Shown here piece after piece: positions 3,685-64,000 of a stretch of 64,000 nucleotides of DNA. Each line of letters opens with the position of its first letter. Position 1 is the first letter of the stretch. Under the pieces are notes generated by a model. That model had not been told where the DNA came from. It did no database searches and saw nothing but the letters and a program-made list of their open reading frames with translations. The position numbers and the translations under genes are program-made. Source of the stretch: Entomortierella parvispora E1425 (taxonomy: Eukaryota > Fungi > Mortierellomycota); contig BQFW01000001.1 of assembly GCA_020891255.1 (NCBI GenBank), positions 2,790,001-2,854,000 on the forward strand, written 5' to 3'.

Positions 3685-5395
3685 ATGTCGTCCTCCCCCG
3701 ATGGAAACCCTCCGCCTTTCAGGGACAGGCTTAAAGAGACCATCCACACCTACTTCAAATTTGGCTACACCACCTTCGGCGGCCCTGCTGCCCACATTGC
3801 CATCCTCTACGACGATATCGTTATCCGCCGCCAATGGATCTCGAACGAACAGTTCACTGAGCTCTTTGCCATCTGTCAAGCCCTCCCTGGTCCCGCCAGC
3901 ACCGAACTCGCTTACTCGCTCTCGCTCGTCAGATCTGGGTTCCTTTGTGCTATTGTCGCGTTTCTCCTCTGGAGGTAAAAAAAAAAAAAGCACTCACAGT
4001 TTAAGCTCATTCTTTTTTTGTTGTTGTTGTACTGAAGTGCATGCATCCCCTGCTTCTATCTTCCGAATAGCCTACCTGGAGCGATCGTCATGACGGTAGC
4101 AGGGGTGTTGATTGGCAAGATCAAGAGCGACATTCCACTGTGGGCAACTCGACTGGAACAGGGACTTGCTTCCGCCGCCATTGGTCTCGTGGCTTTGGCG
4201 GCCTACAAAATGTCGACCACCCTGGCGACTGATAAACTTACCAGGATCCTGGCTCTAGTGGCGGGAAGTGTCTCGGCTCTGTACAGCGCGCCTTGGCTGC
4301 TTCCAGTCATGATGATTGCAGGGGGTCTTGTCAGTTATATCTTTGACACCTTCTTGCAGCCGCTCTATATCAAGACGACCGAGAGGCGGGAGAGCAAGTC
4401 TGACAATAATGAACAAATAGCTGGGAATGCGGAAGCCCACAGCGATCAACTTTCGACTGTGGTTCAGGACATGGATCTTGAACAAGGACATCCGGATGCT
4501 GCTCTGGAGCTCGCAAATGTAGATGAACCGAAGGCCAAGAATAGTAGCGATAGTACGTCTCTTCGAAACCGCAATCGAATCGACTCTACAGTGGTAGACA
4601 TGGACGCCGACCTAAACCCCGTAACGAGCGAAAAGGTAGCAACTCTTTTTTTTTTTTTGGAGGAAGACACTTTTCTTCAGGATCCCAAGACAAGACTAAC
4701 CAACCGATCGGATACAGTTTGAGGCGCGTCGTTTGTTGTTTACCTATTCGAAAAAGCTAGGTCTAGCCTTTTTTGCCGTCTTTCTCGTATTGTTGATAGC
4801 CGCCATCCTAGTACGTGTCCTCGTTCCGACCTCCACTGAAGCGGAATATGGTCAACTAGTTGCGACGTTTTACTTTGTCGGATCCATCATCTTTGGTGGC
4901 GGACCCGTCATCATCCCTCTCCTTAAGACCTACACCGTCGACTCTGGATGGATGACCGATCAACAGTTCCTGGTCGGACTCGCTTTGATCCAATCCCTGC
5001 CAGGACCCAATTTCAACTTTGCCTGTTTCCTGGGGGCTGTGGCAATGGTCAACGCAAACCAGAGTGGCGTCGCTGGAGCTGTTCTCTGTTACTTGGCCAT
5101 TTTTTTCCCAGGGTTGATTCTCAAGAATGCCATCATTCCGTTTTGGCAGTTTGTACGAAAACACGCTGCTGTGAAACGCATCTTCAGAGGTGTAAACGCC
5201 TGTGCGTTGGGCTTGGTCTTTTCAGCCATGTGGCTGCTATGGATACAGACGAATGCTATGGGAGGCAACAGTGGATACCATGCCGTGATTGCCAGTATAG
5301 CATTCGTGTTCTCGGGTTATCTGAACATACCCGCACCACTGGTCATTCTTCTCGGAGGTGCGCTGGGTGCAATTGAATACGCTGTCTCTGTGTGA
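3685..5395 (+). CDS. Long-chain chromate ion transporter (CHR family), 3 exons
   Basis: Two homologous halves carry the CHR motifs FGYTTFGGPAAHIAIL...FAICQALPGPASTE and GSIIFGGGPVIIPLL...GLALIQSLPGPNFNFA. There are multiple hydrophobic helices. Confidence 0.92.
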
Positions 5396-7082: not shown

Positions 7083-7130
7083 ATCACGTGGTATGACGTC
7101 ACGTGTATGTAATTTGTCATCACGTGATGA
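7083..7130. promoter_or_regulatory. Cluster of E-box (CACGTG x3) and CRE (TGACGTCA) motifs
   Basis: ATCACGTG 7083-7090, TGACGTCA 7094-7101, CACGTG 7100-7105, and the 14-bp palindrome TCATCACGTGATGA 7117-7130. Function is inferred. Confidence 0.5.
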
Positions 7131-7176
7131 GAAACGTTGGGTTTATTATTGAACTTTCTGACAACTTTGATGAATT

Positions 7177-7784
7177 TGTCGTGACTCTCGGTATCACGAC
7201 TGATCCTTAGGGTGTGTCGAGCGTGTTCTTCTACACTGGGCACCACAGTCAGCTACCTTGACTGTAATCGAGATGGAAGGGCAAAGAAAGGATATGTTTA
7301 ATAAGATATTCTGTGTGTTACTACTGATAGGGTTCTCAAGAGGGTTACCTGTAATCGAGATGGAAGGGCAAAGAAAGGATGCCGTTCTAAGTCTCGATAC
7401 AGAGCTACTTATACACTGAAGGTAGTGAAGTGAGACTATACTGCTGACACTATGGAAATAAATAGTGAAGGGCTTATGACTATTCTGGAATAGGGGCCCT
7501 AACGTCCGAGGTTTCAAAGAGCTTGGTCGACCGGCGTGGAGACAAGCTTTTGATTGGCAACGGTTGGTAGGTTAATGTCGGAGAAACATGAAATGCTCCG
7601 TTCGTGAGTATACACGGTTGAGGGTAGTCGACCTGGTGATAGTCAACGACGATGACGCGCGGCACAAGTGCAATGAGGGCGCGCAACAAGGGTCCATTCA
7701 TCAGGCGTGTCGGCGGTCAGGTGATCGTAAGTCATGTGATCAGACGCGGAGCTGGCGGGGATAAAAGCAGTCTGATTCACGACA
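7177..7784 (-). mobile_element. Isolated LTR (608 bp) of the Ty3/gypsy family whose body is at 61259-64000
   Basis: It is the reverse complement of 61259-61867 with only two differences seen by eye (one substitution, one 1-nt indel). The termini are TGTCGTGA...TCACGACA inverted repeats, and there is an internal 32-bp direct repeat (7262-7293, 7349-7380). No target-site duplication is visible. Confidence 0.95.
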
Positions 7785-7804
7785 TTGACAAGCTCCGACA
7801 ACAA

Positions 7805-7875
7805 GAAAGTGTAGTATATGGGTATCATTCCGGCCTTCCAAGCCTGAGAACCGGGTTCGAGTCCCGGCACTTTCA
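7805..7875 (+). tRNA. tRNA-Gly(TCC), atypical acceptor stem
   Basis: Acceptor stem GAAAGTG/CACTTTC plus discriminator A; anticodon arm CCGGC-CTTCCAA-GCCTG; T-arm CCGGG-TTCGAGT-CCCGG. A TTTT run follows immediately. Confidence 0.85.
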
Positions 7876-8034: not shown

Positions 8035-11000
8035 CTACTTCCAGGTTGAGCCGGACACTATTGTAGGAGAACGATGCAAATTAGTACCTGGACATCACCG
8101 TTTGAAAGGAAAGAAATAAGACGGAAAAAGAAAAGAGCGAAAACTTACAAGAATTAGAAGAGACAGATCTCGCAGCTCCAAGTTTCGGGATTCGGCTGGT
8201 ATTAGGGGTGCTGATGCTGGAGCTGGTGCCACGTCCGATTTGATGGCTGGTGGCGGAATGCGGTATCGAGGATGAAGATGCAGATGAAGATGAGGATGAC
8301 AAAGAAGAGAGGCCATTGGGCACCACGATCGGCGGACAGACAGGATCCAGAGGATGAACTGACTCCTGATCAAGATATCGTGGTGGGTAAGATCCTGGAC
8401 TTCCTGCATCTGGGCCGGTCGTGTGTGTGTAATGGTGGGCGGGTGGAGAATAAAGACCAGTCCCCTCGGTCGCTCTGGAAGACGTTGGGGTTGACCTCGA
8501 TTGAGAGATGTACTCGGGAACATCCAATAGAGCTGATCCAGAGGGCGAAACAGGTGAACTATTGGCCATAAAGGCAGAGCTATGCGATCGACTCACGGAG
8601 GCTGAACGTCCTGTGCTTCTGGATGTTGGAGAGGTCACAGCAGAGGTGGTTGCAGAGGATGAAGTAGAGTTCTGCATAGTGTTCGATCTGGTCATCTGGG
8701 ATCGTCGCGTACTGCTGGGCAGACTCTTTTTGTTCTTTGGACATCCTCCATCCTCCATCAAATGTTGCTTCCATGAAGATTCGTCGCCTGGAGAAATAAT
8801 GGTCTGGCAAAGTGGACAACGGACAGTCGATTCTGGCACTCCTACAACAATGAAAACCCAGGGGAAGAAATAAATGAGTATGCAGGAAGATTAAGAGATC
8901 ATCGCTGTTGACCCTGATCAACTCTATAGGTCTCACTCACCTTGACAGCCCGTTGCGACGTGGGGCAAAAACATGTCGGCTGGCATGATCTCACGACACA
9001 TCTCACACTGCTTCACAAACTTCCGCCTTGTACACTCGTGAAGGATATGTTCTGTGAGAGTGGGGACTTCAATAATCTGGTGAATCGCAAAAAAGGAGAG
9101 AAAAAAAAAATTCAATGCAAACTCGAAAACGAAAAAGATCTGCTTCACCTCCCATCGCATGATTTTCCAACTTACAATCTTGCAAAACTGGCAATTCGCG
9201 AGCATGGCACATTCGCTCCAGTAATGTGTCACTAGCCCCTCGTCTGTGAATGCACTGTTCCGCTCATCGCAAAAGACACAGAACCTCTCTTTGGTTGAGC
9301 TAGACGGCGGGCTTGCATCTGATTGATTCGAGCTTTTTTCCACCGCAGGAACACCTGGCTTTTTCAGAGACCTCTGTTGGCCGGCCTTTGTCCTTGGTTG
9401 AAGAGGACGAACAGCCGTTCTGGGAGCTGTGCTCGGTGGTGTTGATGTCAATGACTACGAGGGCAGATCCGCAGGAGCAATGTCAGATCATGGTATTTTC
9501 AGTACGCAGACATCAAAGATGAGAATCCTACCTTTGTTGTTTCGGAAGAGGCTGTCGATTCGTTGGCCTCGTCGGGAGACATTGCGCTCTGTTTTTTGGC
9601 CATGGATTTTGGGATACCTAAAAAAAGGAAAGGCGGTCAGTTTCTCGAAAGATGGAAACGTCGCTCGCGTCAACAGGTGGTAATCCTTCTTACCGGTGTA
9701 CAAAGCCTGTGTTGCTTTGATGGAAGATCGAAGTGGCATCTTCAATCGCGCTTGATGGGCTAAAGCAGCATCTGACCGCTGTCTGGTGCTCTGGCGACTG
9801 GAGGGTTTAGAAGTAGTAGGTGACTCGGGTGGTTCGACCAAAAGCCTCTTGAGCGAGTCCATATGCAAGTCAACAAAAGGAATTGGACCCCGACCCTTGC
9901 TCGAACGAGAGGTATCGGATGGTGGTGAACGTGCCTCCTGTGACCGAGAAGAGGTATTGAGGGTTCTTTCTGCAGGTGGTGTCGGTGTCCTCAAGCTGGC
10001 AATGGTGGGTCTCTTGCGCTCCAGTTCTTTTTGAATGCTCTGCCAGATTTGAAAAAAAAAAAAAAAAAAAAAAAAATATGAGATTCCTCGCCATAGTCCC
10101 CTAAGTAGATAATGATCCTTCAGCGGCGGTGTCGTTCTTTCTCTTACCTCTATGATCAGTGGCTTTACTCCGGGCAGGAACTGCTCCACCCGTGTTTTGG
10201 ATAAAAACTTGCAAACATCAATGATGAGCTTTCTAGCCGCGACACGGACCTCGGCATTGGTATGATTGATGTAAGGAATCGCAAATTCGGTAATGTTCTA
10301 AAAAAATCCATTCAAGTTGTTAGAAGAGGGACAGGCGATATAGAACATTGATTTCCCCCTTTGCAAGTCCAAGGTATCCCTTTACCTCAAAGTCCAACCC
10401 GCCTGCGGTTCCGATCCCAGCAGTTCCATCATAGACACCAAATTCATTTGCCAAACGAGCCACGATCTCCACGCGTGCTTGAGCTTGTCGGTAAAGCACC
10501 GTACTCCTGGCCGGCTTGAACACCAAGGGGAGGACGGAATAAGGATGAGACCTGAAGCAATTACAGAGCATCACAATTCGATCGAGTGTCCCTTGGCGGA
10601 CTCTGGTATTAAGATCGGATGCACGGATCAACAACAGCGCGAAAATTGGTTCCAATGACTGGAATGTGGACGACGTTGGTACCTCATTTTGCAAGCTGAA
10701 TTCTAAAAGAAGGAAACCGTGGCGCTTGTTACTCTCTCTGAAAGCAAAACAATCTCCTAAAAGCGGCCGTCAAATATTTGTCCTGTCAAAAACTTACTGA
10801 CGACCTGATCCAAAAGCGCAAAGGACATAGAAACAACTTTTTCTCGCGTGTCGGTCAGAGCTGCATTCAAAATCTGAAAAGTGGCACTTGACAAAAGAAC
10901 CTACACGTTTTTCAAAAAAAAAAAAAAAAAAAGTTTTGTCAACAACAGCCAACCGTGATGAGAGAACGATCTGATTTGAGCTTTCCTGAGGCGAATCGTG

Positions 11001-13170
11001 TCGGATATCACATTTTTACCTTATCGCAAGCCAGGTCAGTGTCGTCCTGGTAGTTTTCATTTTCCATAAACTCCTTGACATACTCGAGAGCATAGAGACG
11101 ATCTTGAAGGTCTCTGCTCACGATTGATGAAATGATCCTGCTATTGAAAATCTCTAGCGCGATCGCGTACGTCTTGCGATCTTGCGCCGAGAGATCATCC
11201 TCGCTCCCGCCTTTGCTGTAGCTATCCTGTCCAATACGCGACATGTTTGCCTCCAAAGGACGTTCTGTGATTTCAGTCAAGACGGGCGACGTAAAGTGTG
11301 CCTGTGGGATTTTTGGCGATCCATGAGGATGTCTGATGAGGCCTGAAGAGTGGGATCTTGAGAATGGCAATGGAATCTTTCCAGAGTACTCGTTCCTCCT
11401 GGGTCGCTCAGGATCCGAGCTATTCTCGCTGGTTGTAGAGGGTGGTCGATGAATTGAAGGCGTGGGGGGCAGACTCTTGCGGCTCGTTTGGAGACGTCTA
11501 TGCGATCCCTCAAAACTGCTATTTGTGGTGTTGAGTTGGGCCGAGACGTTGGAGAAATTGCCCACAGATGCACTCTTTGTCAAAACGAAGGAGGACTGAT
11601 TACGTTCGCTGGCATCCTCTTGATCCCTTGGAGGTGTCATTGAGATGCGAGTAGCATTCTCCTCCTCCACAATGTAGAATCCGTTTTGCGAGAGATGTGC
11701 ATCCATTTTTGCTTTGATGTCGTTGACCTGTGCTTTTAGATCCTGAGCAAGATCGAAATCCTCTGTTTCTGCAGCTTGTCTTTTTTCAATGTCCAGAGCC
11801 TGAATTTCATCCGCCCACTGGTTTTACAATAGCTTTGTTAGTATTCATCTTGCATTGGTCCACTTCACCTCGACAGATCTTCTGGGCTCATGGGACTCAC
11901 CTGGATCACTTGCTCGTATCCTGCCTTGTAGAGCTTTGCAGAGTGAAAATCCTCGACTAACGGTAAAAGATTCAGGTTAGCAGATCGTTGACAAGACAAT
12001 TCTGAGAGAGGATCCGCGTTTAGTACCTTTCACGGCATCCAGCTTCGCCTTTATAAATCCCGACACAAGACGCTGCACCTCCTGGTCCAAGTAAGAATCC
12101 TGATGAACTTTAGTCTCGGCTATAGAAAGGGAGCGAACAGCGTCCCCAAGCGAGGGCATATCGGGCAAGATTGGCTCGGGTTCTGGAATGAATGACTGGA
12201 TGGCAGAGGTCGCCTCTGTGAATCCCTGTCCTGGGCCGTTAATGACCTCGCACTCGTCAAAGTCCAGTCTCTCCGAGTCAGCCACAAGCTCATCATTCAG
12301 GGGTTCGCCCAATACATTCAGAGCGAGAATTGCGACCTAGGGTGTGGTTCCGTGGGGTCTGATCAATACAAAGTCATTCTTCTTTGGACCGAAGAATATA
12401 CACCAAAAATCGAATGAATTGTACCTGATGATAGATATTGAGTGGGTTGACGTGACATTGTCGGATAACCACTCGAAGGTATTCACCCTTGACATCAAAG
12501 TTAATGGAGCGCAGCTCCCGTCCAGAGTAGTTTGATCCGGCGTTGCTGTCAAACGATATCGAGCCGAGCTTTTGAAACTGCAACACAGGAAGCTCCTTTT
12601 TGGGGATGTCGTAACCGATTAAGTCGATACTGTCGTCCTCTGCTTCATAATTGTTATCTCCACCGTCCTGTCCATAATTTGCATCCTGTCCGTTCTCCTG
12701 TCCTCCGTTCTCATGAATGTCAGAGAGAACAGCACCTTTCCGGGAACCCATCCAAAAGTCGAGCTTGCTTGCAATCTTGTACTGATGGGACAGGATCTGA
12801 ATCTTTCGGATTCTCGAGTATCCACTCGAGAACCGAAGCACGAGGTCCTGAGGATAGCTGCAAAACCTATTACGTTATAGTCCCAAGCAAGCGGTTTTTG
12901 TAACATGAGCAATCAGTCCTCCGGCAATTCAGGAGCCACAACGTTTTCCCGTTTCATGACAAGGGATCCTCGTCTGTTTTTTTTTTGGGGGGGGGGGGGG
13001 AAGAGTGATAAAGGGCGTCAATCCCTGCACGATGATCTCTACCTGGGAGTATGCCATCCTTTTCCCACAGATGTCTGCATCAAACCGACGAGCTCTTCTG
13101 GTGGATATCCTGCATCCCATCCCGATGCCATCTGGATCTCGTAATGCAACCGTTGGGGTGCTAGGACCAT
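8035..13170 (-). CDS. CEP104: Centrosomal protein CEP104 homologue (N-terminal jelly-roll, coiled coil, TOG/HEAT repeats, C-terminal zinc fingers), many exons; start codon tentative
   Basis: The N-terminus reads ASGWDAGYPPEEL...KGWHTPR|FCSYPQDLVLRFSSGYSRIRKIQILSHQYKIASKLDFWMG, followed by YSGRELRSINFDVKGEYLRVVIRQCHVNPLNIYHQV. There are HEAT-like segments (DLNTRVRQ, GVKPLIIE). The zinc fingers are FCVFCDE...HYWSECAMLANCQFC, EVPTLTEHILHEC and RCPLCQTII...WKQHL...GCPKN. Confidence 0.85.
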
Positions 13171-59312: not shown

Positions 59313-59352
59313 TGACGTCATAGGAAGCAACGGCGGCTAACTATCACGTGAT
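59313..59352. promoter_or_regulatory. CRE (TGACGTCA) and E-box palindrome (ATCACGTGAT) upstream of tRNA-Leu
   Basis: TGACGTCA at 59313-59320 and ATCACGTGAT at 59343-59352. Function is inferred. Confidence 0.5.
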
Positions 59353-59398: not shown

Positions 59399-59481
59399 GG
59401 AGAGATGGCCGAGTTGGTCTAAGGCGCCGCGTTAAGGCCGCGGTCTATTCGTAGGCGTGGGTTCAAATCCCACTCTCTTCA
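59399..59481 (+). tRNA. tRNA-Leu(AAG)
   Basis: Acceptor stem GGAGAGA/TCTCTTC plus A; anticodon arm CCGCG-TTAAGGC-CGCGG; long variable arm; T-arm GTGGG-TTCAAAT-CCCAC. T-runs follow downstream. Confidence 0.95.
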
Positions 59482-61126
59482 CTTTCTTTTACTCCTCAGC
59501 GGAGTACCTCTTTTTTTTTGCCAAAAACTCCACTAGCGTGTCTGCCCGTGGCATATGCCCCGGGACCGCTCTCTGGACCGTCGAATTTTTTTCATCCTAT
59601 CCACCGGTATGTAATTGGCCAAGACAAAAAAGATGATGGGAGAAGAGACGAAGGTAAGAGGAGTTTGGATGATGGATTCAGCGGGTACGATTGGAATTTG
59701 GTTCGGAGCGGATGGTTTTTTGGCGCGACAAGGCTGGTGACAAGACTTGGAGTTGCAGGACTATCAACCCCGGGATAGTAGACATGCTTTTGTCAGGTAG
59801 GTCGGTAGGCTGGCAAATAAGAGAAAGAAAGGTTGGTGGTTGGAGAGGGCTCAGTGAGGATCAGTGAACATGTCAAAGTCGTCGAATTCATTTTCTTTTT
59901 TTTTTGTTGTTGATCGATCGGACAAGTCTCCAACATCCCAACATCCTTCTTTTTGAGCAATCCTACATCCTACACCAGCTGGATCACTAGATAGTTTTCG
60001 GACAGCCCGGTGAGTCCCTGGGTCCCTATCATCATTCACAATTGAGACCGATTATATGACTATTGTATAATATTATCTAGGACACGCCTCTTGCACTCTG
60101 ATCCAACGATCCAGTCCCGAATGGCGACGCTTCTTGTGTATAGCGTGGATGAGACGGTTATGGGACCATCAGCATTCCTTGTATTTACCTCGCCTCCAAG
60201 ACGCAGCTTCACATTTTTACGCTTCTCATGCATTTAATAATTCCGCGCCTCCGCGAAGGCATACTATCGGCCCCTATAAAAGAGGTCCCAGTCCTGAGAT
60301 GTACTGTGCTTCCTCATCCCGACGACAGCGCCCTAGTGGTCAGTCGGGGTCCTCGTCTTTCCTCTCCCTCCTCTACCACAGACGAGTCAGCGCCAACACT
60401 TTAAAAACCATTGTTCCGCCGCCAATAGTTCCTGCTGCAAAGCCTTCCCTCACCAGCACCATTGCGCGGATATCAAGATGCAAGATGAGTGCGTTTACCG
60501 GCTCATCTCGACTCAATTCGTCTGGGGCAAAGCACTGCCCTGCCGTAGATAGAGCCCATCGCTTTTTGGAACGTCCTAAAAAGTCTGAGAGTTTCATGAT
60601 GCCTCAAGCAGCCTTTTTTTTTTTTTTTTTTTTTTTCTGGATCAAACGAGAAATAAACATTGCTTGGATCTGAATTTTGTTTGACGGTTGGAGCCAAAGT
60701 GTACACAAAAAAACAATGGTGTCGCTTTAGACGCGAACAGAACGCGAAAAAAGCCCCTTGTACACACAAGTGCTGTGTCAGCTGCAGCCAAAAAAAAAAA
60801 AAAAAAAAAGAAGAAGTCGAAGAGACAGTAGCTTGCCACCCAATGTTCAACTGTAACACTTATCCCTGCCCCTGCTGTCAGGCTAGTCCAGTTTTCGAAG
60901 AATTCTCGATTGCTCAATGGCTCCTCCCTTCTTCTCGCTGGAAACAAGAGGATCAGGTTTACCGTCCGCCATGTTCGGACATTTCGGCCACAGGGGTTGT
61001 CAACGAATGATAGTTAGAGAATGGTCAGGTCGACAGAAAAGCGACCCAAAAAAGAAAGTTCTCTCCTGGTCGGCGGATAGATCAAAGGGTTACCTTCGGG
61101 GGGTTCCAAAAACAAAACAAAAGTGA

Positions 61127-61165: not shown

Positions 61166-61238
61166 TGCTCTCTGGCAGGTTCGAACTGTCGACCTTCAGA
61201 TTATGAGACTGACGCTCTGCCAACTGAGCTAAGAAAGC
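61166..61238 (-). tRNA. tRNA-Met(CAT), elongator type
   Basis: GCTTTCTTAGCTCAGTTGGCAGAGCGTCAGTCTCATAATCTGAAGGTCGACAGTTCGAACCTGCCAGAGAGCA. It has G1-C72, a U31-U39 pair and a TTCG T-loop, which mark the elongator rather than the initiator type. Confidence 0.95.
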
Positions 61239-61258
61239 TAGGAAGGATTTGATGACGA

Positions 61259-61867
61259 TGTCGTGAATCAGACTGCTTTTATCCCCGCCAGCTCCGCGTC
61301 TGATCACATGACTTACGATCACCTGACCGCCGACACGCCTGATGAATGGACCCTTGTTGCGCGCCCTCATTGCACTTGTGCCGCGCGTCATCGTCGTTGA
61401 CTATCACCAGGTCGACTACCCTCAACCGTGTATACTCACGAACGGAGCATTTCATGTTTCTCCGACATTAACCTACCAACCGTTGCCAATCAAAAGCTTG
61501 TCTCCACGCCGGTCGACCAAGCTCTTTGAAACCTCGGACGTTAGGGCCCCTATTCCAGAATAGTCATAAGCCCTTCACTATTTATTTCCATAGTGTCAGC
61601 AGTATAGTCTCACTTCACTACCTTCAGTATATAAGTAGCTCTGTATCGAGACTTAGAACGGCATCCTTTCTTTGCCCTTCCATCTCGATTACAGGTAACC
61701 CTCTTGAGAACCCTATCAGTAGTAACACACAGAATATCTTATTAAACATATCCTTTCTTTTGCCCTTCCATCTCGATTACAGTCAAGGTAGCTGACTGTG
61801 GTGCCCAGTGTAGAAGAACACGCTCGACACACCCTAAGGATCAGTCGTGATACCGAGAGTCACGACA
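61259..61867 (+). repeat. 5' LTR (609 bp)
   Basis: TGTCGTGA...TCACGACA termini; near-identical to 7177-7784; putative TATA box TATATAA at 61628-61634; internal 32/33-bp direct repeat at 61663-61694 and 61750-61782. Confidence 0.95.
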
Positions 61868-61871
61868 AATT

Positions 61872-61888
61872 TGGTAGCAAAGGACAGT
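61872..61888 (+). promoter_or_regulatory. Primer-binding site, probably for initiator tRNA-Met
   Basis: TGGTAGCAAAGGACAGT lies 4 nt after the LTR. Its complement ACTGTCCTTTGCTACCA resembles the 3' end of eukaryotic tRNAiMet (…CCTCTGCTACCA in vertebrates) and does not match any of the three tRNAs in this window. Confidence 0.75.
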
Positions 61889-62016
61889 AGCAGTCCTACC
61901 GCCACGCCCATCCAAAGGACAGTAGCAGTCCTACCGCCACGCCCATCCAAAGGACAGTAGTAGTCCTACCGCCACGCCCATTCAAAGGACAGTAGTAGTC
62001 CTACCGCCACGCCATT
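61878..62016 (+). repeat. Four tandem 35-bp units in the retroelement leader, the first overlapping the PBS
   Basis: CAAAGGACAGTAG(C/T)AGTCCTACCGCCACGCCCAT(C/T) at 61878, 61913, 61948 and 61983 (the last unit is 34 bp). Confidence 0.93.
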
Positions 62017-62052
62017 CAAGACGACCACCTTCCCTACCCACTTCCTTACATC

Positions 62053-62976
62053 ATGAATCAACATCAACACAACTTCGACGACGATATTGACGATGAACCC
62101 AACACGTCAAGCTATCACGCCGCCTCCACCTTCACCGTTCCCGAACCTGTAATCCACAATGATCGTCCCTAAAAGAACCTTTTGCCCTCGGATCATGAAA
62201 CTTTCAATGGCACCTGCTCCCACCACGAGGCCCGAGCATGGTTGCTACAGACAGAGTTGATTGCAGACATCAGTGAGATTCCTAGACCGAAATGGCCCAG
62301 AGCCGCGATTGCCAAGCTTCGAGGTGACGCAAGAGTCTGGGGCCTGAATTACAACTCACTCCACACCAATGCCACGTGGGACACTTTCTCAGCCGCCTTT
62401 TTAAGTCAGTTCAGCTCAGAAGACTTGGAAGAGACCCTTCGCAACGAACTCGATAGTGTTGTCTGGGAAAAGACAGACACCCCCAACACCTTCTTCCACC
62501 GTTTTCAGTTTGCTTTGATGCCTCTTGGTACCAATGTATCTGAAGGAGAAAAAGTACACGTCTTCAAGACCCGAAGTCCACAATTTTTGCGAAAATTTCT
62601 GATCGAACACCAAGTCAAAACCTGGCAACAAGTCCGCCAACACTGTGAAATCCGAACAGAGATGAGCACAAGCCTTGGTATCATTTCCCAATCCGCGCAG
62701 AACCGAATCAACCAAGCCAGACAAACGCCGCCGTCTCGCCCTTTTGTTGCTCCATCACGCTTTGGTTCCCCAAGACTTTTCCAACACCACGCTGCTGCAA
62801 CAGCCCCGCCCCCTCGTCCCTCTCACATTACTGGAAACCCCACTACTGGTTTTTCAACTGGAAAACGCGTTAGTTTCTCTGGTCATCCGTTTTCACGCCC
62901 TCCAGATCGACGAGACAGCACCCAAAACCAAAAATCAAAGTCAAGGTCGTCGATCTTCGATGGATATGGACGTTGA
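62053..62976 (+). pseudogene. Retrotransposon gag (capsid-like), interrupted by an in-frame TAA at 62170-62172
   Basis: ATG 62053 (MNQHQHNFDDD…) is in frame with ORF 62182-62976 (AIAKLRGDARVW…TWDTFSAAFLSQF). The zinc knuckles lie in the +1 frame. Confidence 0.8.
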
Positions 62977-64000
62977 TGTGTTCAACATCGAGTGCCACAA
63001 TTGCGGAGACAATCACAAGGCCGCAGAATGCCCCAAGCCGCAAACTTGTTATAACTGTGGACAGCGAGGACACTACAAACGCGACTGCCCTCAAGGAGGA
63101 CAAAACCAAGGACGACCACAACGAAGGAATCGCCCAAACGTGAACATCAACATGACCCATATCGATCCACAAGATTTCAAGCCCGAAACTTGCCCATTGA
63201 TGGTCGTACCCCTCTACGTCGACGGTTGGCAATTCGACGCCCTTTTTGATAACGGCGCCAACGTCAACGTTATTTCTTCTCGTGCCCTCGAAGTTATCCG
63301 TGAAGAATCCCCGGAATCCATCCTCGATGAAAAACGAATCTATGAGCCGACCCCTGTACGAACAGCCCATGCAGGGAGACCTAGGTGCTAAGGCACTAGG
63401 CGAAGTCATCCTTCGAGTTGTTATTGGAGAACACACCTGCCGTTTCACAGCCACGGTTGTTCCCGACCTAGCTCACGATGTTTTCATTGGACTTCCATGG
63501 ATGTTCCGCTACAAACCTCAAATCAATTGGGATCGCTACTCATTGACTTGGCAAGTCAATGGCCGAAAACACGAAGCCATCGCCAGATCTCAGCCCGCCA
63601 GTACCCTTCTGCAGAACGAACAGGTACCTGAACTTGCATATGTGCAGACGAACGCACAGCGGTTCTTACACACCATGGCCGCCGATGATACACAAGAAGC
63701 AGGAATCGTTTGGTTAATGAAAACCCACGTTCCAGAACACACCCGAGCAGAAGAGCTCATGACCAACCCGGACCTGACAGTAGAACAGCAAGCTCAAATC
63801 GATGAGATAGTGAAGGAGTACCAGCAGGATGTATTCGCTCCACTCTCAGAGATGCCACCAGCCCGTCCCGGTTTCGATCACCAAATCCCCACTGGAGTAA
63901 CAAGTCCTGTGGTCAAGAAGATATATAAGATGTCACCCCTCGAGCTCAAGACTCTCAAAGAACAGTTGGATGAGCTGTTACGGTTGGGGTACATCCAGCC
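62870..64000 (+). pseudogene. Nucleocapsid knuckles, protease and RT start of the retrotransposon, with a frameshift near 63375; left boundary approximate
   Basis: MDMDVD-CHNCGDNHKAAEC-CYNCGQRGHYKRDC and LFDNGA are in one frame. After a +1 shift at GCAGGGAGAC, the frame GDLGAKALGEVILRV…GYIQP stays open to the window end. Confidence 0.85.

Follow-up and report, generated by a model that had tools for sequence, protein, structure and literature searches.

Integration beside tRNA genes is a textbook case of safe-site choice by retrotransposons; known from work on social amoebae, budding yeasts and fission yeasts, it evolved several times with different protein contacts. The strategy is well known from the long terminal repeat (LTR) elements Ty3, Tj1, Tca8, Ylt1 and DGLT-A (PMC5911963), and a 2018 review described tRNA-targeting Ty3/gypsy retrotransposons from Ascomycota yeasts and Dictyostelia only, with more predicted in fungi (PMC5911963). 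In Saccharomyces cerevisiae, Ty3 (Metaviridae) inserts 1-4 bp from the RNA polymerase III (Pol III) start site (PMC5911963, PMC8632968); its integrase docks on TBP and Brf1, with insertion at 2-3 bp (PMC8632968). The Dictyostelium Ty3/gypsy element DGLT-A lies 13-33 bp upstream of tRNA genes (PMC5911963, PMC5006619), and the Ty3/gypsy elements Tj1 of Schizosaccharomyces japonicus and Tca8/beta, Ylt1, Tyl3 and Tyl6 of Candida and Yarrowia, all from Ascomycota yeasts, lie, by observation or by experiment, 1-30 bp upstream of the tRNA start or coding region (PMC5911963). Here we analyze a tRNA-targeting Ty3/gypsy element, which we name family 1, found in a 64,000-nucleotide stretch of the Entomortierella parvispora E1425 genome (G000:C1:2790001-2854000, from a 38.9 Mb assembly of 20 contigs); this whole stretch is called the window, and plain coordinates refer to it. 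What is new is the host phylum, Mortierellomycota, and the features distinctive of family 1 are its strict orientation, a 4-bp target-site duplication (TSD), an integrase tail that is not a chromodomain and a promoter-like LTR edge.

Family 1 is very probably an active or very recently active Ty3/gypsy family whose integration is directed, in one orientation, to the Pol III start region of tRNA genes. Two of its insertions lie in the window, the full-length element E2 and a solo LTR. The tRNA genes in the window and in the flanks of every LTR insertion were called with ARAGORN (two ARAGORN ends were corrected by hand by 1 base), and the features on which the comparison rests are as follows.

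61166-61238, minus strand: elongator tRNA-Met (CAT), target of E2 (ARAGORN; Rfam tRNA match at G000:C1:2851166-2851238)
61239-61258, no strand: 20-nt spacer from the tRNA-Met +1 to the LTR, its last 4 nt being the TSD ACGA (61255-61258)
61259-61867, plus strand: 5' LTR of E2, 609 bp, TGTCGTGA...TCACGACA, with TG...CA ends and an 8-bp terminal inverted repeat
7177-7784, minus strand: solo LTR of family 1, 608 bp, with its 5' edge (7784) toward tRNA-Gly (by sequence comparison with the E2 LTR)
7785-7804, no strand: 20-nt spacer from the solo LTR to tRNA-Gly (ARAGORN and LTR alignment)
7805-7875, plus strand: tRNA-Gly (TCC), target of the solo LTR (ARAGORN)
7084-7127, no strand: three (T)CACGTG boxes that stood close upstream of tRNA-Gly before the 608-bp LTR displaced them
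59399-59482, plus strand: tRNA-Leu (AAG), unoccupied, for comparison (ARAGORN; TCACGTGA box at 59344-59351)

The two LTRs are 99.7% identical, differing by 1 substitution and 1 indel; the TGTCGTGA end points at the tRNA in both, and the two 20-nt spacers are unrelated in sequence. An earlier note, made from the letters of the window alone, had proposed just this arrangement, and its coordinates for the LTR edges, the tRNA +1 positions and the spacers all proved correct against ARAGORN and the LTR comparison, as did the shared LTR polarity and the occupation of two of the three window tRNA genes (tRNA-Met and tRNA-Gly carry an LTR, tRNA-Leu does not). The TSD that it predicted at the far end of E2 is present, with ACGA directly after the 3' LTR at G000:C1:2867112. 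Read toward tRNA-Met, this TSD is followed in the spacer by a CATCAAA motif, presumed to be the Pol III start region. The solo LTR has no matching TSD (AATT at 7172-7176 versus TTGA at 7785-7789, read toward the tRNA), and the empty-site contig of another isolate joins the tRNA-Gly region at 7107 rather than at 7176; recombination of two neighbouring insertions, or a small deletion, would fit both the mismatch and the shifted joint.

A search of the whole assembly with the LTR gave 27 matches, representing 10 full-length elements (E1-E10), 4 solo LTRs (S1-S4) and 1 fragment of 113 bp (F1). At 15 of 15 insertions a tRNA gene lies directly upstream of the 5' LTR edge, always divergent, so that the tRNA is transcribed away from the element. 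The distance from the LTR edge to the mature tRNA +1 is 7 bp (once), 14 bp (four times), 15 bp (three times), 17 bp (twice), 20 bp (three times), 22 bp and 35 bp (once each), with a median of 15 bp (n = 15). The targets are Met (two), Asn (two), Glu (two), Cys, Ser, Leu(AAG), Leu(CAA), Lys, His, Gly(TCC), Gly(GCC) and Asp, and span 13 anticodon classes; family 1 occupies 5 of the 63 best-scoring tRNA genes. The probability of this window and orientation is about 4 × 10⁻⁴ per insertion and about 5 × 10⁻⁵¹ for all 15, in an estimate that takes all 1,193 loose candidates as tRNA genes; taken alone, the single orientation at 15 of 15 insertions gives p = 6 × 10⁻⁵. Chance is excluded as the source of the tRNA association. 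The assembly-wide LTR search returned no family 1 copy away from tRNA genes, and therefore none at 5S or U6 genes, which the earlier note had wanted included in the distance survey. The earlier note had offered a position- and orientation-specific Pol III-targeting family on the strength of two loci, and the genome-wide survey of distance and orientation supports it, with every insertion at a tRNA gene, one orientation throughout and a peak at -14 to -20. Its spacing of "exactly 20 bp" does not generalize; it is a feature of this window, because distances across the genome range from 7 to 35 bp.

The insertions are independent and young. Perfect 4-bp TSDs, all different, are counted at eleven insertions, among them 9 of the 10 full-length copies and one of the four solo LTRs (S1), and the flanks are mutually unrelated. 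LTR variants that are private to one copy occur in both of its LTRs, including three deletions in E10, as reverse transcription predicts. The 5' and 3' LTRs of a copy differ at 0-1 positions (the E2 pair by one homopolymer base), and copies differ from each other by 8-26 substitutions over 6.1 kb. E1 offers an internal control, as it sits between two identical head-to-head elongator tRNA-Met genes with mirrored upstream regions that hold several CACGTG boxes each (G000:C8:601137-601351); only one of the twins was struck, and the free twin preserves the exact pre-insertion sequence with a single CAAT.

Other isolates and a second element family point the same way. In Logan contigs of the source strain, LTR depth is about 23 times that of unique sequence, in agreement with the assembly, and the LTR has no depth, at 80% likeness, in any of three further isolates that bear the same species label. 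In two of these three, contigs bridge the upstream region into tRNA-Gly without the 608-bp LTR; one joins exactly at 7785, and in the other the bridging contig falls short of the window by about 610 bp. A second Ty3/gypsy family (family 2) begins just past the window and served as a control.

G000:C1:2855492-2865631 and G000:C8:1246256-1251321: family 2 elements

Family 2 measures 5,066 bp, with 111-bp LTRs, a 5-bp TSD and a 967-aa pol open reading frame (ORF) whose product is about 39% identical to family 1 pol. It has at least 41 LTR matches, often clustered, and is inserted in E2 and E8, with one copy nested within another in E2. A DNA transposon with inverted ends was considered for the E2 and E8 insert and ruled out by its 111-bp direct LTRs and pol. 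A tRNA gene lies within 1.5 kb at 0 of 25 family 2 LTR loci, and the tRNA association therefore belongs to family 1 and not to repeats of this genome in general.

The family 1 element is about 6.1 kb long, with 608/609-bp LTRs, a 4-bp TSD and an initiator tRNA-Met (tRNAiMet) primer site. E5 and E6 hold one unbroken gag-pol frame, whose product in E5, counted from the first ATG, has 1,627 aa. The frame extends about 140 nt into the 3' LTR. Pfam models match in the order gag (86-172), CCHC (332-348), RVT_1 (662-822), RT_RNaseH (920-1023), Integrase_H2C2 (1112-1167) and rve (1182-1280), and no Pfam protease model reached threshold in gag-pol. The best relatives of solved structure are the Ty3 reverse transcriptase (RT)/RNase H (RH) (E = 2 × 10⁻⁷⁶) and, for the integrase (IN), Ty3 Gag-Pol (E = 3 × 10⁻²⁴), the latter no better than foamy-virus integrase. 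The RT-RH-IN order and the Ty3 match bear out the proposed Ty3/gypsy identity, and the RT and IN that were expected beyond the window end exist: E2 continues past 64000, and both domains are found in the gag-pol frame of the family. The parts of E2 that fall in the window are listed here.

61628-61635, plus strand: TATA box inside the 5' LTR
61663-61694 and 61750-61782, plus strand: two copies of a 32/33-nt repeat in the LTR
61741-61746, plus strand: poly(A) signal ATTAAA inside the 5' LTR
61872-61883, plus strand: primer-binding site TGGTAGCAAAGG, 4 nt (AATT) after the LTR, complementary to the last 12 nt, CCA included, of the host tRNAiMet
61880-62020, plus strand: 35-bp tandem repeats in the 5' untranslated region, the unit number varying by one between copies
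62053-64000, plus strand: start of gag-pol (gag, CCHC knuckles and the start of RT), running off the window

Five identical 72-nt host genes with the hallmarks of initiator tRNA-Met end in CCTTTGCTA; a 16-nt primer-site pattern matched no tRNA, and its first 12 nt alone pair with tRNAiMet. A polypurine tract, GGGGGGAG, immediately precedes the 3' LTR. The tandem repeats of the 5' untranslated region overlap the end of the primer-binding site and contain a hairpin, AGGAC...GTCCT. Within the LTR, the first repeat copy starts about 30 nt past the TATA box and is followed by GTAAC (GTAAC or GTAAG across the LTRs compared), and the second follows ATTAAA and ends in AG; the same layout is kept with different sequence in the LTRs of relatives with 72-80% pol identity (L040, about 4568-4712; L041, about 5185-5322). 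The interval 61663-61782 is probably the R region, to judge from this arrangement, and may hold an intron whose removal takes out the 5' poly(A) signal, or the repeat may be a strand-transfer device. E2 itself carries an in-frame TAA at 62170-62172 and, past the window, nested family 2 copies that bring its total to 15,853 bp; because of the stop codon and the nested insertions it is dead.

Set beside the known systems, family 1 combines traits of several. It agrees with Ty3 in the RT-RH-IN order, the tRNAiMet primer and the narrow window of insertion upstream of tRNA genes, in family 1 putatively at the Pol III start region, and its structural model suggests that a long helix joins the integrase core to the C-terminal domain, in the place of the extended linker of Ty3. 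It differs in having one gag-pol ORF in two copies, whereas Ty3 uses a +1 frameshift, and in its host, which belongs to a different phylum. The TSD of Ty3 is 5 bp, that of family 1 is 4 bp. Ty3 also inserts both ways with Tfc1 (PMC5911963), in contrast to the single orientation of family 1. No vestigial chromodomain was detected in the family 1 integrase tail, which is helical in a low-confidence model, whereas the chromodomain barrel of Ty3 contacts Brf1. Since the integrase is no closer to Ty3 than to foamy virus, common descent of the targeting is unproven. With DGLT-A, family 1 broadly shares the distance from the tRNA gene, the single gag-pol ORF and the lack of a chromodomain (PMC5911963, PMC5006619); DGLT-A differs in inserting in either orientation and in having no full-length active copies. 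Its tether is the RNase H, which binds TFIIIC subunit Tfc4 (PMC6101501), whereas the spacing in family 1 speaks for a ruler upstream of the gene. In Tj1, gag and pol are two ORFs and a stop codon is suppressed.

The evidence for such a ruler comes from 14 empty sites rebuilt from the flanking sequence. In 13 of the 14, the closest CACGTG box has its end 35-46 bp upstream of the TSD (mean 41.4, standard deviation (SD) 3.1), and the distance from LTR to tRNA is more scattered (SD 6.6 versus 3.1 for the box spacing). The LTR-tRNA distance follows the box-tRNA distance with a slope of 0.92 and r = 0.89, two quantities that are not independent of each other. The two outliers, at 7 and 35 bp from the tRNA, are unexceptional in box spacing (42 and 37). 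The TSD is preceded, about 16-25 bp upstream, by a TATA-like (C)ATAAA(G) and followed by YATC or CAAC. E7 lacks a CACGTG box within 200 bp but is a typical site in other respects, with the TATA-like box present. Because the two outliers keep their box spacing and the TATA-like box recurs, we favour a positional ruler on the upstream promoter complex, which would be TFIIIB at the TATA-like box, over intragenic TFIIIC. Upstream of host tRNA genes, at about 50-90 bp from the mature 5' end, stand one to three (T)CACGTG(A) boxes, and 6 of the 9 TCACGTG matches in the window fall no more than 100 bp upstream of tRNA-Gly (in its pre-insertion state) and tRNA-Leu.

The position and orientation specificity, the independence, the youth and the anatomy of family 1 are observed directly, and on these motifs we infer TFIIIB as the docking partner. 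Upstream of the tRNA gene, the intasome would dock on the Pol III pre-initiation complex, with TFIIIB on the TATA-like box, and join the cDNA at a point a few bp upstream of where Pol III starts, as for Ty3. In the single orientation observed, the U3 end of the 5' LTR adjoins the tRNA, and the element is transcribed away from it.

Several observations weigh against this interpretation. It is mostly the two outlier loci that favour the upstream ruler (F-test p = 0.007, Levene p = 0.2), and we infer the Pol III start site as the insertion point from motifs only. The single orientation could come in part from purging of the opposite one, and for DGLT-A a route by way of RNase H and TFIIIC leads to similar sites (PMC6101501). 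The gag-pol frame is broken in 8 of the 10 full-length copies; the single-base indels among the eight standard-length copies all fall in homopolymer runs, several of them common to more than one copy, and these breaks may be assembly errors. Lastly, the integrase C-terminus had been put forward as the place to look for a targeting domain, and a tail of about 130 aa, conserved in relatives with 57-80% identity, does follow the SH3-like C-terminal domain. An AlphaFold model gives it three helices and no second barrel at low confidence (mean predicted local distance difference test score 58), and the tail matches no Pfam model, the chromodomain (PF00385) included. The Ty3-Brf1 contact therefore cannot simply be transferred to family 1. 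The chromodomain is also absent from the closest Mucoromycota relatives and present in plant and algal matches.

The alternative that survives best, which we nevertheless regard as unlikely, is that TFIIIC on the intragenic A and B boxes guides the element in place of TFIIIB, in the RNase H/Tfc4 style of DGLT-A. DGLT-A reaches the same window, 13-33 bp upstream, in this way (PMC6101501), the unbroken family 1 copies have one gag-pol ORF as it does, and 11 of 15 insertions are reported at 14-20 bp from the tRNA; TFIIIC moreover sets the directionality of Ty3 (PMC8632968) and so may explain the strict orientation. An intragenic ruler, however, predicts a constant distance to the tRNA, and the 7- and 35-bp cases break that rule while their upstream spacing is normal.

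Slightly less probable again is a tether that is not TFIIIB at all and consists of a protein bound to the CACGTG boxes upstream of tRNA genes, with insertion about 41 bp away. The constancy of the box-to-TSD spacing (35-46 bp) speaks for such a protein, whereas E7 is typical despite its missing box, the window has TCACGTG matches remote from tRNA genes (35240, 49508 and 51950) that carry no LTR, and every one of the 15 insertions adjoins a tRNA gene, on the side of the box that faces it.

Far less credible is random or weakly biased integration in which only harmless insertions upstream of tRNA genes survive selection. The genome is gene-dense, the upstream regions of tRNA genes are classic safe havens (PMC5006619), and only fixed copies are visible, all of which would suit survival by selection. 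Against it, the LTR pairs are identical and leave little time for selection, all 15 insertions fall in a 29-bp window in one orientation when safe intergenic space is far larger, and family 2 persists at dozens of non-tRNA sites of the same genome. Copying of one ancestral tRNA-LTR junction by segmental duplication, or a tRNA that is part of the element, could draw only on E1 and E2, which adjoin identical tRNA-Met genes at 20 nt each, and is refuted, as the earlier note had argued from its two unrelated spacers, by 13 anticodon classes among the targets, by TSDs that are all different (ATTG and ACGA for E1 and E2) and lie between LTR and tRNA, by spacers that differ between E1 and E2, by unrelated flanks and by other isolates that have the tRNA without the LTR.

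The edge of the LTR that faces the tRNA has features of its own.

61277-61282, plus strand: TTTTAT (ATAAAA toward the tRNA) at the LTR edge
61305-61310, plus strand: E-box-like CACATG, LTR nt 47-52
61320-61325, plus strand: E-box-like CACCTG, LTR nt 62-67

In the direction of the tRNA, the outermost 70 nt of the LTR read ATAAAAG at nt 18-24 and hold an E-box-like pair, spaced as in native tRNA upstream regions. CYTTTWA at LTR nt 18-24 is kept in four diverged LTRs: those of family 1, of two metagenomic relatives (72-80% pol identity) and of a family that adjoins S4. The LTR next to S4 has a perfect CACGTG at its nt 43-48 and 57-62, and S4 inserted 4 bp from the edge of this older LTR, 42 bp from its CACGTG. 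It is conceivable, and no more than a tentative suggestion from these motifs, that the LTR edge acts as a surrogate Pol III upstream promoter that would keep the tRNA gene working and re-create a target for the next insertion; re-creation of the target is proposed because S4 appears to have used the edge of the older LTR, 42 bp from its CACGTG. The LTR-edge bases may instead be an integrase-binding or U3 enhancer sequence. For Tj1, Tca8/beta, Ylt1, Tyl3 and Tyl6, no such resemblance of the LTR edge to the upstream promoter of tRNA genes has been reported. The older LTR belongs to a third LTR retrotransposon, directly behind S4 at tRNA-Asp (G000:C14:2004120 onward), with an LTR of about 590 bp; it has the first 8 nt and the GCTTTTAT motif in common with family 1, the same tRNAiMet primer-binding site and an RT that is about 48% identical. 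Two LTR families are thus stacked at one tRNA-Asp gene.

The host is an early-diverging fungus of the Mortierellaceae, to judge by a housekeeping protein encoded in the window, a ubiquitin hydrolase whose best similarity in a homologue search is to Modicella (80%, partial), Linnemannia (75%), Dissophora (74%) and Podila (67%), and the fungal placement suggested earlier is borne out. The searchable literature yielded no description, for Mucoromycota, Mortierella or early-diverging fungi, of retrotransposons that target tRNA genes, which agrees with the earlier note, aware of no description of such a family. A young family with full-length copies extends the safe-site strategy to an early-diverging fungal phylum, and the distinctive layout of CACGTG and TATA-like boxes upstream of the host tRNA genes lets the positional ruler be asked about. 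Fungi of the Mortierella type can be cultivated and transformed, so the tether could be found by experiment, and it would be of interest for site-specific DNA insertion tools.

The closest relatives of the family 1 pol are metagenomic and Logan proteins (57-80% identity), followed by chromodomain-less Ty3/gypsy elements of Mucoromycota (42-50%). Two of the former (P0002 and P0004, 72-80%) are known from collapsed, element-length contigs without flanks and therefore cannot show tRNA targeting. A relative at 42-43%, in a low-GC Mucoromycota-like genome, has a tRNA gene 0.5-0.8 kb past the 3' LTR and in the same direction at two of three loci, with LTR-like repeats between the 3' LTR and the tRNA (L074, 10080-11044; L073, about 10360-11214), an arrangement that is suggestive though not comparable to that of family 1. 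In other early-diverging fungi, too, transposable elements may accumulate near tRNA genes.

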